The notes beneath the pieces were generated by a model that was not told the origin of the DNA, searched no databases, and was given only the letters and a program-made list of their open reading frames with translations. The translations under genes and the position numbers were made by a program. 64,000 bases of DNA from Oikopleura dioica (taxonomy: Eukaryota > Animalia > Chordata): NCBI GenBank assembly GCA_907165135.1, contig OU015568.1, positions 5,890,001 through 5,954,000 of the forward strand. The letters run 5' to 3'. This document shows, piece by piece, positions 14,351 through 26,130 of the stretch; position 1 is the first letter of the stretch; every line of letters starts with the position of its first letter.

Positions 14351-17300
14351 ATGAACAGCGCTTTAATCCGGAAGAGAAACAATCAGGCCAAAGCGACCAG
14401 CAAAAAGCTGAGAGATAAATGGTAAGGAAAAAATCTGCCTAAATTTTTGTTGATTTGTGATTGATAAAAAAAGACTTGTATTTTGTTTTTTATATACATG
14501 TACATAACGATTGCTAGAGCTCGGCGAAGGGGAGGTGTCTGGAACCGAGAAAAAATTTCGACAGATTTTGCGTGGAAATTTTCAACCAATCAGAAGCCTC
14601 GATTCGGCAAACCGAGTAGCCGCCAACCAAAAATTTGTCGAAAATTTTTGTCAATTCCAAACACCTAGGCAACCTGTGTCAAAACCTGAGTCAGGTTTTG
14701 AAAGATCGCCTTATAATAAGAAATCTTTCAGAACCTGACTCAGGTTTTCTACACAGGTTTCCGAGGCCACTTCAATTCTTCGACCCTTAGATGAAAGAAC
14801 AGTTTTTCTTCAAACAAGCAATTTTTGATACAGTAACAGTCTGGCAATTCGGGATTGAAATGCTGAATGTCGGGGTTTGACATTCACAAACGAGCGGATG
14901 AGTTCTTTCACCGACTGTCGCGGCCAGTTTGATCGATCATTCGCGACAGAAATTAACCTTTTACCGGAATCGCCGCTCATTTTAAATTTTTCTTTTTCAG
15001 GAAAAAGGCCGAAAAGCGAGAAATCAACCTTGGCCAGCTTCTTCTCTGCGCGCATTGTAATCCAAGGTAAGCGAAAAAAGCTGGGTAGAAAATCTGTGTC
15101 AGGGTCTGAAAAGCGGAGCGCCTGTATTGAAAACCTGAGTCAGGGTTAAAATTTAAAACAAAATGATTTATTAGGTTATTCTTGCGTAGCCGCTCTGCGG
15201 CTTTGTTTTTTAAAAAGCGGCTTTTAATTAATGATCTCTAAAACCCTGACTCAGGTTTTCAATACGAGTTTGCGAGTTCAGAAAAAGAGTCGTTTTTTAA
15301 CTTTTCGAAAACGAAAGTGGATAGCGGTTATCATGGCTGGAATAAAAATGATTTACGTTCTCAAGCATTTACGGTCATAATTCTTGTTTATGAACATCCA
15401 AGGAAATAATTAGCGTCGAACGAAAAGGGTAGATGTGATGGTCATTTTTAAGAGAAAAAAAGGATAAAATGACTATTTGGACTTTTGGAAACAGTTTTAA
15501 CAATAGAGTTAATCGACGACTTAAAGGGTGAATACCTTGTTTCTGTAAAATAAGGGGGTAACTACGCGATTCTCATTCCTGACTAACGGACTCCCCAGTC
15601 AGTCAAATCGGTTGGACACTTTACAATGCAAAATTTGTCCAAACGAATTGAATTGGTTCCGTGGGAACCCCGTCAAAGTCACTCCGCCCCCAATTCTTTG
15701 ACCGGAGGTTGAATATATGATTACTCTTACCAATTCAGTTTTTTTTTTGACCACGTGATCACTTGGAGGACCCCTGGAGGACCCCACCTACTGGAAGACC
15801 TCTTTGCTGGAAGACCAATAATAACAGGGACAGACTCTCACATATTGAATTTTTGTGGTCATATTTCTACCACGTGATCGTGGAGGACCCTTTTTTTCTG
15901 GAGGACTCCTCTTCTGGAAGATTTTTTGTTGGAAGATCAAGTCTCAGCCCCGTCCCTGGCTTTTAAATTGAAATGGGCTTTAACTGTTTACGGGCTAGTT
16001 TTTCTTTTTTTTAACAAATTTAGTTCTAGAGAATATTCTAGAGATTAGATTCTAGAGAACTTAAAAAAGAAAATTTTGAACAAAAATTCCCTCTTTTTTA
16101 CCGTTTTTCGACTCAAAAGTCCATTCTCCGCCATTTTCGGTCCAAGATTCTTTCAGCAATTGACTAATTAAGTGCGAACAATCAACTTTGATTGAGCCTT
16201 TAGCTCGAAAATTATGAGCAGGTGAAAGTTAGAGCCCTGTTAGATCAGGTTTCTACTGTGTTTTTTTTTCAAGCGAGAAGAAATTTGATTTTTTAGAGAA
16301 TAAGGTGCTCTTTTTCATAACAGTAAGTTCGCCGATTCGACAAGGGCTTTTTATTTTAATGATAATTAATAATCGGCTCATTAGCATTAGCATTACTGGC
16401 GCTTGTTCAGAAAGAACCATTAGATGGTGACAAATTCGCAAAAGAAGTTAATTAACTTCCTCGTTTATCTTTATTATGCAGAAGAAACGGATCACGGCGG
16501 GCCAGGCCGATCTCCAGACCTTCCAGCTTTTTCGAAAAAGAGCTTCCTTCTTTGCAGAAATAAAGCGTTTTTAAGGAACATGCTTAGTTCTGTTGCTGGG
16601 CGAGCGCATGGATCGAGAGCGAGACCTTCAAAAGCCAGGTAAGAAAGAAAACTGTGTAGAAAACCTGAGTCAGGATTTGCCAGCGCGGCTTTTATTAAAA
16701 ATCATTCTGAACCCTGACTCAGGATTTTTACACAGGTCAAATCGGATGAAATTTTTTATTACGAAATTTTTGCAATCAAAAATTTTTTTTTGAAATCAAG
16801 GAAGAGTACAAAAATCATAAATTCCCGATCAAAGCAAAAAAATTAAACCAAGATGGATGACAGGATTATTCGAAAGATTATGTTTTTACGATGCTAAAAC
16901 TATGAACCTGAGAAAATGAGGCACGGAAAAAATCCGATTTATTAGAAATTTTTTAATTTTAATTTGAATGTTCGTCAGAGGAAGAAGGCATTCGAGTTTT
17001 AGCTTGGGCAGTTTGGGCGACTCGGGCAGATTTTTACAAAAGTAAGTTTTTTCTTTTTTATGAAATACAAGAGGAGCTATTAATCTAAACGGGCGGATTT
17101 AGTGGATAAGCATTAGAGTCTTGGCTCGAAAACCTGTGTAGAAAACATGAGTCAGGTTTTGAAAACCTAAAATAGAAAGCTACGCGGCCTTTTATTATAT
17201 GGATATAGTCATCGATTTTGGTCAGGTCTCCAATTTTGGCCAAATCGACGACTATACCCTTAAGTCTTCAAAGCCTGACTCAAGTTTTCTACGCAGGTTT

Positions 17301-20075
17301 CCGAGCCGAGGGTACTTCAAGTAGTATCCAAGATAGAACATTTTCTAGCTCCCGGGAATAGCCCAATAAATAATTAGCCATGCGAGAGTTTCTTTAGAAA
17401 TACGTTGTAGTGCGAACAAGTGAACCCTTGGAGCAAAGCATGTGTGTTTTGGAGCAGAAATAGAAGTAGTTTCTCGAGCTGCTTTGAGCGGATCAGGCGC
17501 GCTTATCTTGAAATATTCACTCAGACAAATTCTCCATTTTTTCTTAATCTCTTTGTCCCGAGACACAAGTGCATTTAAAAATATGCTGCAAGCCGGGTTT
17601 TCGAAACTGGTTACTGCTAAACAGAGAAGCGAGATTTGAGAAAAAAATTATGCTAATGCTTTCTCGAAGAACTTCGCTCCAGCCTTTTAACGGGTTCAAT
17701 AAAGCCAGAAGGTGAGAAGTTTTAATGATTTTTACAAAAATTTAAGGGGGGTCTGTTGAATAAGGGGGGGGGGGCTTTTTTGGCCCTTTTTGAAGCCTGC
17801 TTTTATTGGCGAAATATTGCATTTGTAAGAGCTTCTTCAACTTGTTGAGGAAATCTTTTTGCGGCGTCGGAAACCTCAGAAACCATGAAAATAAATTCGC
17901 GCCTTAAAGACACTTCACACAGTTTCAGAGTCCCATTTAGGAGAGATGAAAAGAAATAGGAAAGGCTTCACATTCTCAAAATTTATCAATTGTAAAATAA
18001 GCGGCGTTCGTTTTTATGGTTTCTCAGGAAAAGGACCGGCTCGGCAACCTGTACAAAAAACCTGAATCAGGGTCTGAAAAAGCTTAGCGGCTTCTCGTAA
18101 AGATGTTTCAGACCCTGACTCAGGTTTACCACACAGGCTGCCAAGCCAAGCCCCTTTACGTTTTTTGTTTCAAACTAACTTGATACCAATGTATGTATAC
18201 CAACTTATCGGTGTCTATCCATTTTAAATACCCTCCGAATTCTGCATCCCTTTAGCCTTAGCTACAGTAAATTATAGATGAAGACTGAGTCTGTTTGCCA
18301 CGTTCTCCGCCACTTTGCCTAAATGCCGGTTACAGTTCGTTGCCTCCTTCTTAATAATTCTAGAGACAGCTGTAGCCACCAAATCGCTTCCTCCTATCCC
18401 TCAATATTTCCTTTAAAAATCATTATTAAAGAAGAAGCTCCTCCACTTGAGCTGCCAAAACAGACTTTTTTTGAATATTGACAATTCCCTTTTTTTTGTC
18501 CTTCTGAGAGAAGCTCAAAATAAAAGAGACTTTTTTATTATGCTGGGGCGGCGGTTGCAAGTGCCAAAAGCACGCGTCCATTGGAAAAAGGCTGCGCAGA
18601 AAATGAGCTTGTAAGTCGAGCTGGAAATTTTAACACTTGTCTCATTGGGAAGACGATGCGCTTTATCACTTTTTGAGTGATAAGGGCATTTTAAGACATT
18701 GGCTTATGTAATCACTATGTGTTTTTTTTTCTTAAATAATTTTATAATTTGCGGCATATTATATTATATAATATTTACCTAAGTTTTTAAGGAGCTTAAA
18801 TATAAAGCCGCCTAGCGGCTTTTTTTTTTAAAAAGCCGCAATATGACCAATTCAATCATTTTTTTTAAATAATTGCGAAGCCGCTTTGCGGCTTCGATTC
18901 TTTCAAAAGCCGCTGCGCGGCTTTTCATTTGAGCTCTTTAAAACCTGACTCAGGTTTTTGCACAGGTTTTTTATATCAAATTTAGAGCCTCAAAGTTCTT
19001 TGTTTGTGAAAAATGAAAATGAGATAATTCTGCGATTTTGAAAATGCCCCGGATTTTGAGCAATAAAAAAGTAGTACTAGCAGAAGAAGGGCGCGCTTGT
19101 ATTGTGAGTGCCGCGAAGATAAAAGTTGTTGAAAGTGTTTCAGCTCGGTGACATACGCGTTAGGCTCCGAGCTTATGGCTCTTTTTAAACGCTCAATAAG
19201 AGCAAAATGGGAAACCATGCTTCGAGAGGAGGCAGACCGTCGAGAATAATTCTGGGATACGAGAACAGAAACTGCCTCGGCGAGAATTACTGGTAAGCGG
19301 AAAGGAGCTCTTAGTGGCTTTTTAAGAGTGCCAAAGGGGAGAAGATAATAAATTAAGCCAGAAAGAGGGGCGAAAAAGAAAAAGGGATAGGTGGGCTAAC
19401 GACAGAAACGAAACGGCTTAAAAGTGACAGGGAAGCAAGGCTAGAGCTGTCAAACTGAAATTTTGCCGAGTCACGTGAGCACCGAAACTTATTCGGAGGC
19501 CGATCACTGTTTTCAATTACAAACTTTATAATGGGGGTTATTTTTAATAATTAAAATATTTTATTTCAACATTATACTGAACATTTTTTATTATAATTTA
19601 TTTATATAAAAAATTGATAAATATTAAATATTCCAATTTAAATAAATAATTTTAAGTAAATCAAAATAGATTTAAATTATAACAATTAATAACAAAGCCG
19701 ATTTAAAATTTTGTTAATCTCTTAGTTAAATCTTTGAATAGAAAATCCGATAAATTTGCATTTTGAAAAGCATTTATCGAATCTGACAGTTGGTTAATTT
19801 TGCTGCTTTGGTAGGTTCTTTTGTTGAGTTTATTTATGGTCTATAAATCTTGGGCTTGTCGAAGGAGCTGCCAAACTCGTCAAGCGATCTTTCTCGCAAG
19901 GACTTCAAGTTGAACCCTTTCTTCCTTTTTCATCCCTTTTCGTTTTTTTTCAACCCTTTTTCAACAGAGATTTTCGGGATCCCAAATGCACCACGTCTCG
20001 ATAAGACGGCTAGATTCTGGAGCCAGTTTCAAGAGACATTCGAAGCCGACCAGAAGGACTACTAAAGAAGGGTAA
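14351..20075 (+). CDS. Possible lineage-specific multi-exon gene of unknown function
   Basis: Scattered short exon-like blocks end in GTAAG/GTGAG donors. The first two (14351-14421, 15001-15067) splice in frame: MNSALIRKRNNQAKATSKKLRDKWKKAEKREINLGQLLLCAHCNP. Later exons could not be joined and no family motif was recognised. Confidence 0.3.
15750..15940. repeat. Two diverged direct repeats, each with CACGTG plus paired TGGAGGAC and TGGAAGA motifs
   Basis: Units at 15750-15818 and 15869-15940 share ACCACGTGATC-TGGAGGACCC-TGGAGGAC-CTGGAAGA-TGGAAGA. Confidence 0.6.
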
Positions 20076-21341
20076 CAGTAACTGACTGTAAATTTCAACA
20101 GCGGGCAAATAGAAAAACTTGTAAATACTGAAAAGTCAGAATGGAGAGAATCAGTCTTGGAGGCTTGCCAATTTTTTGATGGGAGATCCGCACTTTTATG
20201 CAGAAGGCAAATGTTGATTTTTGTTGCTTTTTCTGTATTTTCCTACGATTATTCGCTCAAATTATTTGATTTTTATTTGACTTTTTTGAACTATTCATTT
20301 TTTCTCAATAAAAGGGGCTACAAACTTTAACAGACAGATAACGATCTGGGCTAGGGGACCTGTGTGGAAAACCTGAGTCAGGGTCTGAAAGTTTGACGGC
20401 TTTTCATCAAAGATCTTTCAAACCCTGACTCAGGTTTTCCTCACAGGTTATCGAGCTAGTAGGAGTAAAAAAAATAATTTTCCAAGCAAATAAATCACGC
20501 GCAGTCGAATAATATTTTTCGTGACAATTAAAATGTTCTCACTAAAAATGATTTCTGCTCCGAATTCCGCTCGATCATCAATAATTTTCACTAATTGCCC
20601 GCTTTTTTATGTTCACAAGTATCCGAAGCGAGATCCGAACGTAAAAGCTGACGGCAATAAAGCGAGTGCTTAGTAAAACTGGAAATACTTTTGACTTTTG
20701 CGCTTCTTGACATTTTCGACAAAGAATGAGTCCTTTTCAGAAGCAAGAGACTTCCTCTTTTTCTCGCTGAAAAATGCTGCTCCAATTCAAGAGCCAAGTT
20801 AGAAGGAGTAGCATCCAGAGATGGGATCGGCAACCTGTGTAGAAATCCTGAGTCAGGCTTTGCATTGAAGCTTTTCAGAAAACCTGACTCAGGCGTTCTA
20901 CACAGGTTGCTGAGCCTAGACACAGAGATTCCAGTAAGTCAAGAAAAAATGAACAACTGTCGTATTAGGAGACAATCTGGAGGGCAGCTTCTTTTTGAAT
21001 AAATTTCAGCGGGCAAATAGACGGCCTCAAGCATCTGATCTTTTGTCAGAATACTCGCACATTACAGTTGTGAGGAAGTTGGTTTTTTCCTATCAGGGAT
21101 CATGGAAGAAAATAGCGTAAAAGAGGAAATACAGGACTTGTAAGATTTCGTTTTTGAAGTATTTCTTAATTTTAACCCGAAATGATTCATTGACCAAAAT
21201 TTTGGAAAAGGGAAAAATGTGCCTTGAAGAAAGAATGATTCAATTTTAAATTTATCAATAAACAAAAATAGCAAAAACCCTTGAGGCTAAAACGCTTAAT
21301 CCAGAATTAAAAAAGGTACTTTCGTCAATTTCCCCCCGAAA

Positions 21342-24300
21342 ATGCCGGAAGAAACAGAGGAAATTGAAATCGAAGAGTTCTACTTTTTTTTTCGTTCAAA
21401 TTCTCACCCGTTATTTCAGGTTGACCCTGGACAACAGGACAAATGCGATAGTACCGGCGCCGCTAAAAGCGAATCGGGCGAGAATCAATGTCTCGGGGAC
21501 GAAGTTTGAGACTTTTATCGCGACGCTAGAAAAGTATCCAGGTAAGAAAAGGTTGCCATTAAGGGTTTCTCGTTGTTATTTAAGGGGAGAGGTTTTGATT
21601 AAAGTTTGTTCAGCTTCATTTATTTGATTAATTGATCGCCAACGAGTTCAAACTTAAGGGTACTACCATCGATTTCTCGAACTTTTTCCTTTTTGGATAT
21701 CAAAGGTAGTCCCCTTAATTTTCTGTTTTTTTTTTTAGATTCGCTACTTGGAAATCGCGAAAAGCGCCAAAAATTCTTCGATGCCGAAACTGACGAATAC
21801 TTTTTCGACCGAAACCCCGAATGTTTCAAAATTATTCTGGAAAGGTCAAAAAACGCCTTGCCGGGGACAGTCTTTGCCGAGCACTTAAAATATAACTACT
21901 TGGAAAACACTTGGAGTCCAAGTTCATGTTTGAAAATTCATGATTTTTGACCTTGACTGTGAGTCGTTTCTACAGTCGGATAAGCTGACGCTGCCGATGA
22001 CGGTGGACATTGAAACCCTCGCCGCGGAAATTTCTTACTTCGAATTGACGTTCAACTTCATCGACCGAGAAGTTCAAACTGAAGAGGACCTTTTTACAAA
22101 CAAAAAAAAGGTATTGACCCCTTTTGAACCCTTTTTATTTAACAAACAAATGAAGACAAAAAAGGACAAAGTGGTAATAGTAAGGGTAAGAAATTGCATC
22201 TTTCGTTTGTCTCGTCAAAAATGATATGTCAATAGAAAATATCAATAGCATAAGTGCCAAACTACTAGAGAACTCTTTGTGTCTGTTTAGATGTCAATAT
22301 TAAGGGTATATCAAGGGCTTAAGGCTTGGAAGCCCTTAATATACAGCCAGAATAAGTGCCTGTTTTTATCCGCTTTTTAGGAGAGCTCTCGAAATCGGGA
22401 AAAATTCGAAAAGCGATTTGGGACATGCTGGAGAAGCCGCAGAGCTCGACTTTTGCTTTCTGCTTTTCGGTGTTTATTCAAATGCTTATTCTGCTCTCCA
22501 TTCTGATTTTCGTCTTGGAGAGTTTGCCTGAATATCGCATCGAATACGGTAAAATCAGATTATTCAAAAAATATTGTTCAAAAAATTTTCTCAGTGCCGA
22601 CTTACATGGAGCCCGTTTTAAAATCCTTCAACTGCGAGGAAATAATCGACCGCTCCTGCTCCGTCTGGAACGACGTCAGTTCCTCCGACTGCCAACAACT
22701 CTGTCTCAACAACTCGATTCCAGACGACTGCTCCTTTTTCAACAACCGCCAATGTCACTCCGTCAGCTACGACGAATCCAGCAGGCAGTGCGTCTTCCAA
22801 TCAAACTGCAAGGAAGAAGAAGTGCTCTTCGAAAAAGTGATAAACGACGAAAAAGCGAGCGACATCGAAAAAACACTGGCGGTTTTTAGCAGCATAAATG
22901 CTGTTTGCATCGCGGTTTTCACGATTGAAATTATTTTGAGACTCATCGCCACTCCAAAGGTACAAATTTGAGAATTTTTTTTAAGAAAAATAGTCTTCCA
23001 TGATTTCAAAGACTAGAGTTAATCGAATAGGCTATTTCAATTTTAACCCATCAGTGCTTGCTAAGTCCAATCTTGGCTCGGAAACCTGTCTAGAAAACCT
23101 GAGTCATGGTCTGAAAGATCTTTAGTGAAAAGCCTAGTAGCGGCTTTTTTTAAAACAAAGCCGCAAAGCGGCTTCGCTAAAATAGAAGAAATTGATTCAA
23201 ATTGAAAGATATTATATCCTTTTTAGCGAAGTTGCCTTGCGGCTTAGTTTTTAAAAAGCCGCTGCGCGGCTATTCATCTTGAGATTTTTCAGACCCTGAC
23301 TCAGGTTTTCTAGACAGGTTGCTGAGCCCTTTATTTATTCCGGCAAGAGTTGATGGGTTAACTCATCATTGCTTTTTACCAATTATTTGGCTGTCGATCA
23401 GTTTTTAACAGTTGATTTAAATTTATCCAACACAGATTTTAATTGTGATTAATTAAAAATCTCGAATTAGAAAGAAGGCCCCCGTAGCAAATACAGCGGC
23501 TTCGGAGTAAGTAATTTCTTTCCACTTTGCATATTCCGTGCTTTGCATTTATAATCCGCCGTTGCTCATTCCATTTCCTCGTAACCCGCAAAACTAACCT
23601 TTCAGAGAAGACAAGAGCCACGGAAGAGAAAATCGAGCCGGCCGAGAGGCGTTGAAGAGAGTTCTTTTCACAAACGGCTGCGCTTTTTCTCAGCAGATTT
23701 CCGAGCTGCTCAAGGGTATCCTTTTTCGGGTATTTCTTGTCCAATCAAAATATTCATTCGTTTTTTTCAGGGTGATGATTTTTGTAAGCTATTTTTGAAA
23801 TGCATGCTTTTGCAGAATTGCAGGTTTTTCAACGACTTTTCGACTAAAGCATCAATAAGTCCTTTTTGGGCAAATTTGCTCAAATAGGTTAAATTTAGCG
23901 GATGAGCCATTGACTTAGTTTGGCAACAAGTGTAGAAAAGCTGTCTCAGAAATCCTCTTCTCAGAGCCCTGAGGCAGTTTTTCACACAAGTTGTTAAACC
24001 AACTAAATGGTTTCTTCGCAAAATTTAACCCATTTGAGCAAATCTGTCCAAAAAGGACACAAATCAAAAGTCGTAGGAAAACGCCGCAACTTTGGTGTTT
24101 CAAAATTCCCTTCTTCATCATTCTAACCTCCTCATTTCTAGCCAAAAGCCTTCTTCCTCGACCCGCTAAATATCATCGATCTTCTGGCAGTTCTGCCATT
24201 TTACATCGAACTCGTGATTCTTCAGGTTTATGGTAATCATGCATGAAACAGATTTGGAGTTGGAGATGCTTTCTTTCCAGAATTTATTGAGTTCAAATTC

Positions 24301-26130
24301 GAATAGTGATCATTAGATTAGACCAGTAATTTTGCTTTTATGATTTGCTTGAAATTATGATCGAGCTCTCTTTTGATTGGCTAAGGTTGGAGCGCCACCT
24401 ACTCTTTGATTTTTCTTGAATCTGATTAGACGGAATAAGGGAACTCAATTGATTTAATACTTAAATAATATTTATTACAATAACAAAATATAATTAATAA
24501 TTAAATGATAAAAAATATATAAATATTTAAGTTTTAATGAATAAATAAAAATAATAATAAGAGATAAAATTATTGATGAAATAAATTATTCTGATAATTT
24601 TTAGATTCTGCTGTTTCTTCATTTTATTGTCATATTTCTTTTGAAATATGCTTTCGACATTTTTTTAAATATTTTTCTTTTGAAAAATTCGAAAAAATTA
24701 ACAAAAAAAACCTCCCTCTTTTGAAATGATCTAACAAGAATTGATTTTTTTTTCTTTCGCTGGGCGAGTTTTATTTTTGATTGGCGCAAAAATGAGCAGA
24801 TCAGCTTTGTCAATGTCGTTGATGTTATCATATAAGAGCTCCAAACTGACATTTCTGGAGAGACGAGCGAGCAGAAATCGGAAATGTTTCGCATTTTGCG
24901 AATTATTCGGCTCATTCGCGTCATTCGCATCCTCCGCTTTTCCAGATACAATCAGAATCTTCAAACTCTTGGTAAGCCATTTCCTCGGCTCGGAAACCTG
25001 TGTACAAAACCTGAGTCAGGGTCTGAAAGAAAACTAATGAAAAGCCGCGCAGCGGCTCCTTTATCCAAGCCGCGAATTTTGCGGCTTCGTTTTATAAAAG
25101 CCGCCATGCGGCTTTTCATTATTGATCTTCCAGACCCTGACTTAGGTTTTTACACAGGTTTCCTAACCCAGGCCTTTTCTTATAAATGACCATCTGTTGA
25201 CGTTTTTCTAAGGAAGGAGTTTGCTGAAATCAACGAGGGAAATCGGCTTTCTGATCATGTTTTATTTGATCTTCTCGATTTTGTGCGCGACGATTGCTTT
25301 TTACGTCGAAAATGAAGTCGAGGACACTGGATTCGACAGCATTCCAAGGTACTTAATTCTTTCTCGTCAATTAACCGCTAATTTCTAGTTCTCTCTGGTG
25401 GGCAATCGTAACGATGACTACTGTAGGCTACGGAGACATGTTTCCCGTAACAGGTAAGCAAACAAACGACCGGCTCCATTTCTCTTAACCCGTTTTAGGA
25501 ATTGGCCGATTTATTGGCTGCATAGCTGTTTTCTGCGGTATTCTCTGCGTTGCACTGCCAATTCCATTCATTTCGAATGCCTTTGAAATGGAATACAAGA
25601 AAGTTCAGGTAAAAAAGAAATATTTATTGAATTGGTTTGGTAAACATGTAAGCAGTTTCCTTTTCTGGAAGTATCTCTCTGCCTTTTCGAGCTCAACTGT
25701 CGTCGTTTTTTTCGACGACAGAGTTCGCAATGCGGAGAAATTTTCTCTGTTTATTTTCTCGCCTTCGTAATTTCTGAAAAAATTTGTTTTTTCTGAATAA
25801 AATTCAAGAGCTTACCTCTTTAAAACGCCCTTCGGACTCTACCAAGCCAGTAGACTGATCATTCCAGCTTTTTGCGCCCTATTTATAGCGAAAATTCTTG
25901 ATCTAGAAAAAAATTCCTTCGCGCGGCGCCTTTTTTGAAGCAAATTTCTCTAGACAAGCTTGTTCCAGAGACTCTTGCCATTTCCCCTCCCTCTCAACGG
26001 CCGCTGGTATCTAGAACCTTTGCTTCAGATCAAGTCGAAATTCCCGCTGGACGAGCAAGAGCCCGGCGAAGACGAGACGCTCCGAATGCGCCTGTGCATG
26101 TACCTCTTCGAGCTGCAAATGGAAGGCTGA
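21342..26130 (+). CDS. Shaker-family voltage-gated K+ channel (T1 + S1-S6) with a Cys-rich PAN/apple-like extracellular insert
   Basis: T1 [10 protein letters not shown]...[12 protein letters not shown]1 [11 protein letters not shown]...LESLPEY. S3 [15 protein letters not shown]4 [21 protein letters not shown]. Pore [18 protein letters not shown]6 ALPIPII. Last exon 26029-26130 ends ELQMEG*. Confidence 0.93.

Follow-up and report, generated by a model that had tools for sequence, protein, structure and literature searches.

In Kv channels, the S1-S2 linker is usually regarded as a short, glycosylated, unstructured connector. The locus considered here, gene g10029 on chromosome PAR of the planktonic tunicate Oikopleura dioica OKI2018_I69, raises the question of whether such a linker can hold a folded domain, and of what that domain would do at the voltage sensor. 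Coordinates refer to the window, the whole 64,000-nucleotide stretch of DNA that was analysed.

Gene structure and public record

Public databases list the product of g10029 solely as a predicted protein that has neither a name nor a PAN annotation. The exon at 22595-22959 is 100% identical to the corresponding part of one such prediction, CAG5082086, and unnamed predictions of this protein have already been deposited for two O. dioica genomes. The protein sequence is therefore not new, and the novelty lies in the reading of the S1-S2 loop alone. The public gene models of the locus are mis-spliced, and the exon at 21964..22110 is left out of the annotated proteins P0006 and P0011; because of the mis-splicing and of the missing PAN annotation, the architecture is invisible in current databases. 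The coding exons and the features that they carry are as follows.

19986..20071, + strand: first coding exon of isoforms t2/t3 (MHHVSIRRL...), from the annotated N-termini of P0006 and P0011 placed in the window
21420..21541, + strand: start of the T1 (BTB_2) tetramerisation domain, from Pfam BTB_2 and alignment with orthologue transcript L001 (344-465)
21739..21839, + strand: T1 exon with a non-canonical GA donor (intron 21840-21963, GA-AG); BTB_2 E 1e-6; L001 464-566
21964..22110, + strand: end of T1 and T1-S1 linker; L001 566-710; skipped in the public annotation
22380..22548, + strand: S1 exon (exon D), with S1 aligned to Shaker S1
22595..22959, + strand: exon E, S1-S2 extracellular loop and S2; a 121-codon open frame, contiguous with exons D and F in L001
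22630..22812, + strand: 8-Cys PAN/apple-like module of 61 residues; PAN_1 E 1.7e-5, 25 bits; ESM features; fold matches; Cys invariant in orthologues
22810..22887, + strand: acidic linker from the module to S2, probably helical (low-confidence helix at residues 73-83 of the first model)
22885..22959, + strand: S2 helix with the conserved charge-transfer F and E; Ion_trans positions 29-57; Kv4.2 and Kv2.1 S2 matches; column check
24142..24232, + strand: S3 exon (exon F); Ion_trans positions 61-84; L001 1243-1335
24837..24971, + strand: S4 exon with seven Arg at every third position; Ion_trans positions 88-118; divergent RNA reads
25213..25348, + strand: S4-S5 linker and S5 exon; Ion_trans positions 121-174; RNA reads
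25389..25453, + strand: pore helix and TVGYGD selectivity filter, from translation
25499..25608, + strand: S6 exon (PIP hinge); Ion_trans positions 209-240; deepest RNA read coverage of the stretch
26029..26130, + strand: last coding exon and TGA stop (..LFELQMEG*); L001 1777-1883; read ends

Isoform t1 uses different first exons, at ~14351 and ~16577. A candidate micro-exon lies at 23471-23506. A start codon at 21342 (MPEETEE) was considered and dropped, as the orthologue transcript and the annotation place the first exons upstream. Two junctions in the T1 region depart from the canonical pattern. The alignment of L001 464-566 runs up to 21839, where the orthologue reads IL/SFLQSDKL, and the 22110/22380 junction is in frame only if splicing is non-canonical or if a base is missing from the A8 run at 22102-22109. 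At the 3' end, loose RNA read ends at ~25621 run on into FPLDEQEIGE, the orthologue version of the last exon.

The channel core

By its sequence, the gene is a divergent Shaker/Kv1-type channel, with voltage-gated K+ conduction as its predicted function. Pfam matches to BTB_2 and then Ion_trans follow the exon order. BTB_2 is matched in the orthologue P0001 with an E-value of 1e-21, and T1 aligns to the Shaker T1; the Cys pair of the Kv2-4 T1 zinc motif is absent from the protein sequence. The Ion_trans core, S1-S6, lies on successive exons and is matched in the full proteins with E-values of 1e-44 to 1e-47. In S4, R1-R6 are all Arg, and the equivalents of F290, E293 and D316 are conserved in five of five clade members. 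The first-pass annotation had identified a Kv channel with intact S4 charges and an intact TVGYGD filter, and this identification stands, as T1, the S4 arginines, the charge-transfer residues and the filter are all present in the predicted protein. The residue N at the position of Shaker E283 in S2 was not taken as a special trait, since N also occurs there in 21 of 116 other homologues.

Among solved structures, the lowest E-values are obtained with Shaker and Kv1.2 (1e-72), followed by Kv2.1 (1e-63), Kv4.2 (1e-60) and Kv3.1 (1e-50), and query residues 177-263 are unmatched in the alignment to the Shaker/Kv1.2 structures. In the FastTree phylogeny, the clade is monophyletic (support 1.0) and is nested in the Shaker group, a set of 90 tips that contains every labelled Kv1 and Shaker sequence (support 0.82); its exact placement is uncertain because it sits on a long branch. 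With Drosophila Shaker and mammalian Kv1.2 and Kv1.3, the protein shares a T1 domain that lacks the Kv2-4 zinc motif, an S1-S6 core, Arg at every third position of S4, the F/E/D centre, TVGYGD and the S6 P-x-P hinge. It differs from them in belonging to a long-branch clade found in appendicularians only, in carrying an aromatic residue, F or Y, where Shaker has T449, and in a loop of 104 residues with 8 Cys and a predicted PAN-like fold, whereas the median loop of the homologues is ~30 residues and Cys-poor.

The Cys-rich module of the S1-S2 loop

Exon E is bordered by AG immediately before 22595 and GT immediately after 22959. The preceding exon stops at 22548 in phase 1, so that E-Y-V is read across the intron. 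Translated in frame, positions 22597-22959 of the + strand contain no stop codon and encode eight Cys between N12 and K72 (22630-22812), followed by S2; the in-frame, eight-Cys insert with S2 on the same exon, as initially described, is thus reproduced to the exact sequence. The following exon was initially placed at 24148, and its start is corrected here to 24142, which has a canonical AG (...TPK/PKAFF) and corresponds to the TPKPKSFF read in orthologue transcripts. The loop comprises 104 residues, from the Y of LESLPEY to the I of INAVC. The 61-residue module holds 8 Cys (codon starts at 22633, 22657, 22690, 22702, 22729, 22753, 22789 and 22807), as against 8 in the remaining 481 residues of the corrected 542-residue protein (binomial P ~8e-6), and it contains one N-x-S sequon (NNS). 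All eight module Cys are unchanged in the aligned orthologues, and within the loop conservation is lowest in the acidic linker (62% identity). Thirteen internal in-frame GT..AG introns that would remove the module were considered and rejected, none having a plausible acceptor tract.

From sequence and modelling, the loop is best read as a PAN/apple-like domain. This was also the first interpretation, and Pfam, language-model features and fold search agree on it, with scores that are near the cutoff or weak. Relative to the Pfam PAN_1 (PF00024) gathering cutoff of 21.4 bits, the isolated exon or loop scores 21.7, 22.5, 25.0 and 23.1 bits; the score falls under the cutoff in full-length P0011 and P0001 (17 bits) and in the loops of P0019 and P0020 (13-15 bits), which match no other Pfam family. 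PAN_1 is matched by 10 of 11 module homologues, and other families do not recur. PAN clusters are also at the top of the ESM feature search (0.92). The C-x3-C motif (22690, 22702) lies in a predicted helix at residues 21-29, and the C..S-Y..C motif lies in predicted strands at residues 47-51 and 56-60, so that the Cys framework of PAN domains, with C-x3-C in the helix, Cys in the strands and an aromatic residue between, is found in the module; it is invariant in alignments A2 and A3.

The AF2 model, which was built from 11 sequences and is of medium confidence (pLDDT 67.7), shows a beta-beta-alpha-beta-beta-beta order; an earlier model of the 97-residue loop, made from 7 sequences, had a pLDDT of 50.6 and was for this reason left out of the fold searches. 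The top Foldseek matches in the PDB, themselves weak, are the N domain of HGF NK1 and the apple lectin SML-2 (probability 0.8, TM 0.51, E ~0.8). With VIA-align against 48,161 chains, ranks 1-4 are the HGF N domain, the TgMIC4 apple domain, the plasminogen PAN domain and SML-2, the best match having a Z of 4.1 and an rmsd of 2.4 over 48 residues, which is weak in absolute terms. In the ESM Atlas fold search, PAN_1 families occupy 6 of 10 rows at TM 0.50-0.56, likewise weak in absolute terms. By their entry titles, the PAN-matched structures include galactose, lacto-N-biose and heparin complexes. Profile searches of PDB sequences gave no significant match: alignment A1 retrieved two apple-domain lectins only (E 0.7 and 6), and the wider alignment A3 retrieved an odorant-binding protein only (E 0.22).

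The PAN/apple domains of HGF (N domain), plasminogen, factor XI, prekallikrein, TgMIC4 and SML-2 would share with the modelled module a C-x3-C helix packed on a beta-sheet. They are extracellular and disulfide-stabilised, and they provide its best Pfam, feature and fold matches. The module itself is probably extracellular, given that the S1-S2 linker lies outside in all aligned solved Kv structures. It differs from classical PAN/apple domains in having 8 Cys, two beyond the apple set, where they have 4-6, and in its length of ~60 residues with borderline sequence scores against PAN_1. PAN/apple domains are found in secreted or single-pass proteins, whereas the O. dioica module lies inside a loop of a polytopic channel.

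Transcription and selective constraint

Three intronless contigs from JGI samples encode orthologues with the loop in frame, and two of the three are polyadenylated. L001 (2046 nt) matches the exons of the window one after another, lacks all introns and has exons D, E and F contiguous; L002 and L003 (encoding P0019 and P0020; ~60% identical) have AATAAA and poly(A) and carry the 8-Cys loop in frame. The loop is also present in CBY12307, a protein of the Bergen genome. A search for orthologues with the insert, which had been proposed as a check, thus found them in related appendicularians with all eight Cys conserved.

RNA reads on the window are 88-95% identical to it, 3'-biased and of the P0001-type lineage (VTAIG, EQEIGE). 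These divergent-lineage reads cover the S4-S6 exons and support the last junction, and their depth over exons D and E is zero at an identity of at least 88%. Being divergent and 3'-biased with no D/E depth, they are therefore uninformative on exon E. The insert is transcribed, as shown in the orthologues rather than in reads of the Okinawa lineage.

Between two O. dioica lineages, the PAN region has a pN of 0.146 versus a pS of 0.868, and the pN of S2-S6 is 0.031; in a second pair, pN is 0.365 versus a pS of 0.955, with 8/8 Cys kept. Relative to the channel core, the module changes at five to eight times the rate while retaining its Cys. As judged from these substitutions, the Cys scaffold of the module is under purifying selection across lineages with saturated synonymous sites. 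Weak constraint is another possible reason for the rapid change of the module.

Occurrence among Kv channels

Among the 121 nearest Kv homologues, the S1-S2 loop has a median length of 30 residues, and a long Cys-rich loop is found in this clade only. The view that S1-S2 loops of Kv channels are normally Cys-poor is borne out, with long Cys-rich loops absent from the other 116 of these homologues. The architecture was first put forward as undescribed, and none was found outside the clade in a search of 1.84 billion representative proteins or in the literature searched; in the latter, a full-text search of incomplete coverage, neither this protein nor any Kv channel with a folded domain between S1 and S2 was described. 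The second match of the large protein search, P0002, was discarded as a bacterial repeat protein whose score sums weak repeat matches. Closest to the module in sequence are marine metagenome ORFs that are unannotated and carry no precomputed Pfam domain.

The Kv1 of Ciona intestinalis (KCNA1-like, P0050) is likewise a tunicate Shaker-type channel with a long S1-S2 loop (73 residues). However, that loop has no Cys, as against 8 in O. dioica, and is of low complexity with abundant N-glycosylation sequons, and for these reasons it is not regarded as a folded domain.

Proposed role of the module

The reading that we favour, with a probability of roughly 0.7, is that the gene encodes an expressed, divergent Shaker channel, so far seen in appendicularians only, whose S1-S2 linker holds an autonomously folding PAN-like domain that is probably a binding module. 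The linker would be expanded to ~104-113 residues and consist of the 8-Cys PAN/apple-like domain and, leading from it into S2, an acidic helical linker. In the tetramer, four PAN-like domains would then stand on the outer channel rim, immediately over the voltage sensors. By analogy, the module most likely serves for extracellular binding, by which the channel would be anchored or clustered or a partner brought in, because PAN/apple domains elsewhere bind glycans or proteins. Fast evolution of the module with its Cys kept fits an interaction surface.

The domain may secondarily affect how the voltage sensor moves, in the manner of a built-in auxiliary-subunit ectodomain. The ectodomains of DPP6/DPP10 with Kv4 and of the Ig-domain Nav beta subunits adjoin voltage sensors. 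The common feature would be a folded extracellular domain by the S1-S2 face that could tune gating and localisation; the O. dioica domain, unlike these subunits, belongs to the alpha subunit, so that the likeness is one of working in a similar way and not of membership. A stronger version holds that a glycan, a component of the matrix or house, or a partner protein docks onto the top of S1-S2 and thereby shifts the voltage-sensor equilibrium, gating being set directly by this ligand; on our assessment it is quite improbable. If it were true, the rapid change of the module surface around a constant Cys scaffold would represent co-evolution with the ligand.

The module may also be a folded 8-Cys domain without a ligand, acting as a structural cap for voltage-sensor folding, ER export or stability and replacing the N-glycans of Kv1 loops. 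Other sampled Kv1 S1-S2 loops are Cys-free and rich in N-x-S/T (such as the 73-residue loop of Ciona Kv1), the module retains one or two sequons, and it evolves fast outside the Cys; however, a disulfide domain of 60 residues would be an expensive way to replace glycans, the scaffold has persisted between lineages with saturated synonymous sites, and the structures closest to the module are those of binding domains. We consider this unlikely.

A little less probable is that the module represents a distinct 8-Cys family (C..W..C-x3-C..N..P..C..C..Y/W..C..C), so far undescribed, whose likeness to PAN is confined to a helix plus hairpin. The PAN_1 scores around or under the threshold, the non-significant profile searches of PDB sequences, with an odorant-binding protein in one of them, and the metagenome ORFs without a Pfam domain as closest relatives would all be compatible with such a family, as would the defensin-like small folds that were also found (Z 2-3). 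Against this, PAN_1 is the sole recurrent Pfam match (10 of 11 divergent members), PAN ranks first in the feature search and in three structure libraries, and the C-x-C strand motif that defensins need is absent.

That the insert is a gene-model artefact or a spliced-out exon piece, the working channel having an ordinary short loop, is highly improbable and already largely refuted: exons D and E lack any read at an identity of at least 88% and the exon contains in-frame GT..AG pairs on paper, but the loop is in frame in three orthologous transcripts, two of them polyadenylated, is under strong purifying selection, and shares its exon with S2, so that exon skipping breaks the frame.

Implications

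On the favoured reading, a binding-type PAN-like domain, its fold predicted, is built into the S1-S2 linker of a Kv channel and is present in orthologue mRNA, which would mean that a complete domain can be accommodated on the outside of a voltage sensor. The channel may thus offer a natural model for how extracellular partners, such as auxiliary subunits, toxins and matrix, act on voltage sensors, and it suggests a possible scaffold for engineered, ligand-tuned Kv channels.

The S1–S2 loop of g10029

Exon E of the Kv channel gene g10029 (22595-22959), which follows the S1 exon D (22380-22548), contains an open frame of 121 codons (22597-22959, + strand, by translation) and is bordered by AG before 22595 and GT after 22959. 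The exon begins 15 residues past the end of S1 and encodes, in order, an 8-Cys stretch, an acidic linker of 25 residues and, at its end, S2.

22630-22812, + strand: 8-Cys stretch of 61 residues (the module), in the translation of exon E

Outside this stretch, the remaining 481 residues hold only 8 Cys (binomial P ~8e-6), and the Y of LESLPEY and the I of INAVC lie 104 residues apart. Because the open frame, splice borders, Cys count and loop length match it, the description in the first-pass annotation of an 8-Cys S1–S2 loop on the exon of S2 is confirmed; the downstream S3 exon (exon F, 24142-24232), however, starts at 24142 and not at 24148.

A Shaker-type channel

Exon E matches CAG5082086 (Oikopleura dioica, Oidioi.mRNA.OKI2018_I69.PAR.g10029.t2) at 100% identity, which places the window on chromosome PAR of the Okinawa reference genome. 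The coding sequence, rebuilt using an orthologous transcript as a guide, comprises 12 coding exons (19986-26130) and specifies a protein of 542 residues, and the Pfam matches in successive exons run from BTB_2 (T1) through Ion_trans positions in S2-S6 order. Among solved structures, the orthologue protein P0001 matches Shaker and Kv1.2 best (E 1e-72), followed by Kv2.1 (1e-63), Kv4.2 (1e-60) and Kv3.1 (1e-50), and its alignment with Shaker is split in two, with query residues 177-263 unmatched. In a FastTree phylogeny of 121 homologues, with the loop excluded from the alignment, the appendicularian channels sharing the Cys-rich loop (the clade) are monophyletic (support 1.0) and form a long branch within the group to which every labelled Kv1 and Shaker sequence belongs (support 0.82). 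The S4 arginines R1-R6, the equivalents of the charge-transfer centre F, E and D, the TVGYGD filter and the S6 P-I-P hinge are kept in all clade members, which bears out the earlier reading of intact S4 charges and filter. Judged by sequence, g10029 is an intact Shaker-type channel.

In the pore exon (25389-25453), the position that corresponds to Shaker T449, directly after GYGDM, is occupied by F in O. dioica and by Y in the orthologues P0019 and P0020; in Shaker, an aromatic residue at this position is associated with high sensitivity to external TEA and with slow C-type inactivation.

Fold and possible role of the module

PAN_1 is the only Pfam family that matches the loop (21.7-25 bits, cutoff 21.4; E 1.7e-5 to 1.8e-4), and it matches 10 of 11 members scanned singly, with no second recurrent family. 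The score drops to 17 bits in full-length proteins, under the 21.4-bit cutoff, and to 13-15 bits in the loops of P0019 and P0020, which explains why databases show only BTB and Ion_trans for the clade proteins. An exhaustive HMMER search with exon E against 1.84 billion representatives returned five proteins at E <=0.001, including the orthologue cluster and three short marine metagenome ORFs with the same 8-Cys pattern; a bacterial repeat protein among the five was judged spurious. Further 8-Cys metagenome ORFs were gained by profile search.

Several of these short ORFs (P0003, P0004, P0005, P0010, P0016, P0017 and P0018; loci L004 and L005) are non-channel and carry the same module, with the pattern ..CNGWSGIS..C-x3-C..NE.P..C..; one source is a Tara Oceans contig, and one ORF opens with a signal-like hydrophobic stretch. 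Larger eukaryotic genes may contain these ORFs as exons.

A language-model feature search ranks PAN clusters first (0.92), and the AlphaFold model of the module (11-sequence alignment, pLDDT 67.7) shows a beta-beta-alpha-beta-beta-beta order. The top Foldseek matches in the PDB are the HGF NK1 N domain and the SML-2 apple lectin (probability 0.8 and 0.72; TM ~0.5; E ~0.8). Ranks 1-4 of VIA-align over 48,161 representative chains are the HGF N domain, TgMIC4 apple, plasminogen PAN and SML-2 (Z 4.1-3.0), with Factor XI and kallikrein apple, an Eimeria PAN module, the S-locus receptor PAN and leech antiplatelet protein at lower ranks, and PAN_1 families occupy 6 of 10 rows of an ESM Atlas shape search. 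The Pfam matches, on either side of the cutoff, and the feature and fold searches point the same way as the PAN/apple assignment of the first-pass annotation; profile searches of the module against PDB sequences gave no significant match. Because the methods agree while every single score is weak, we call the module PAN/apple-like, with a probability of roughly 80-85%; it has two Cys more than an apple domain.

A Cys-rich, PAN-like domain with a predicted fold lies in the extracellular S1–S2 linker, and the proposed combination of a Kv channel with an extracellular PAN module stands as an architecture. In the tetramer, four such domains would sit at the rim, above the voltage sensors. Since the PAN/apple domains closest in structure bind glycans, heparin or proteins according to their entry titles, extracellular binding is the most likely role, which would anchor, cluster or partner the channel; binding might also affect voltage-sensor movement, the coupling proposed in the first-pass annotation. 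A structural cap without ligand, standing in for the usual S1–S2 loop glycans, is a less likely role. Less probably, the module represents a separate 8-Cys family that is PAN in appearance only; the agreement among methods argues for the PAN/apple-like reading.

Transcripts and gene models

The RNA-run reads come from a divergent lineage and their coverage excludes exons D and E; mRNA support rests on three independent orthologue contigs from JGI samples. L001 (2046 nt), which encodes P0001, aligns exon by exon to the window at 80-87% identity, with all introns absent and exons D, E and F joined directly. L002 and L003, which encode P0019 and P0020 (~60% identical to the window protein), have unbroken reading frames, with AATAAA and a poly(A) tail downstream, and are therefore mRNAs. 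The PAN-like domain is transcribed in these orthologues, and a gene-model artefact is largely excluded because the orthologous transcripts contain the loop.

In the public models g10029.t1-t3, a non-canonical GA-AG intron (21840-21963) is retained and the exon 21964-22110 is skipped, which deletes the second half of T1; the junction 21839/21964 (..IIL/SFLQSDKL) is backed by L001. The junction between the T1-linker and S1 exons (22102-22111, 22379-22381) is out of frame under GT-AG splicing; keeping the frame requires either a non-canonical splice displaced by a single base or an A8 run that the assembly gives one base too short, and A9 would create a canonical phase-1 donor. A 12-residue micro-exon in the S2-S3 linker (23471-23506, within a 1.2-kb intron) is present in t2 and t3 and missing from t1, the Bergen protein and L001; either alternative splicing or an annotation artefact may account for it. 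Alternative first exons lie at ~14351, ~16577-16640 and 19986-20071; the N-terminus of t1 (MNSALIRK..) resembles that of Bergen, and t2 and t3 begin with MHHVSIRRL... These differing cytoplasmic N-termini could confer differing inactivation behaviour.

Palindromic MITE-like copies sit in, or just upstream of, introns of g10029, and one copy makes up almost all of the 241-nt intron that separates the S4 exon from the S5 exon.

20344-20456, 20819-20916, 23070-23329, 24982-25172: palindromic MITE-like element, four copies, arms ~45 nt (..AACCTGAGTCAGGGTCTGAAAG..)
23859-24058: separate inverted repeat, 81-nt

Conservation and rarity

The same loop is present in the Bergen genome protein CBY12307/E4XR91 and in single-exon ORFs of further lineages, and all 8 Cys are invariant across these, P0001, P0019 and P0020. 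Between the window and L001, the module has pS 0.87 (synonymous sites saturated) and pN 0.146, and S2-S6 has pN 0.031; the module values for the L002/L003 pair are pN 0.365 and pS 0.955. The low pN relative to saturated pS indicates that the module is coding and constrained; it evolves five to eight times faster than the channel core, with the Cys scaffold fixed. The Cys-rich PAN-like domain is conserved among appendicularian orthologues, and the channel architecture is so far confined to appendicularians.

The 121 closest Kv homologues span cnidarians to vertebrates and have a median S1–S2 loop of 30 residues, and among them only the clade has loops of >75 residues or with >2 Cys; the next longest, in Ciona Kv1, has 73 residues but no Cys. 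No Kv homologue among the matches listed has a precomputed PAN domain, and full-text literature searches found no description of the g10029 protein or of a Kv channel with such an architecture, in agreement with the earlier remark that no such channel was known. The architecture, a Shaker-family channel whose voltage sensor carries an inserted domain, is already in public databases, although unrecognised there.
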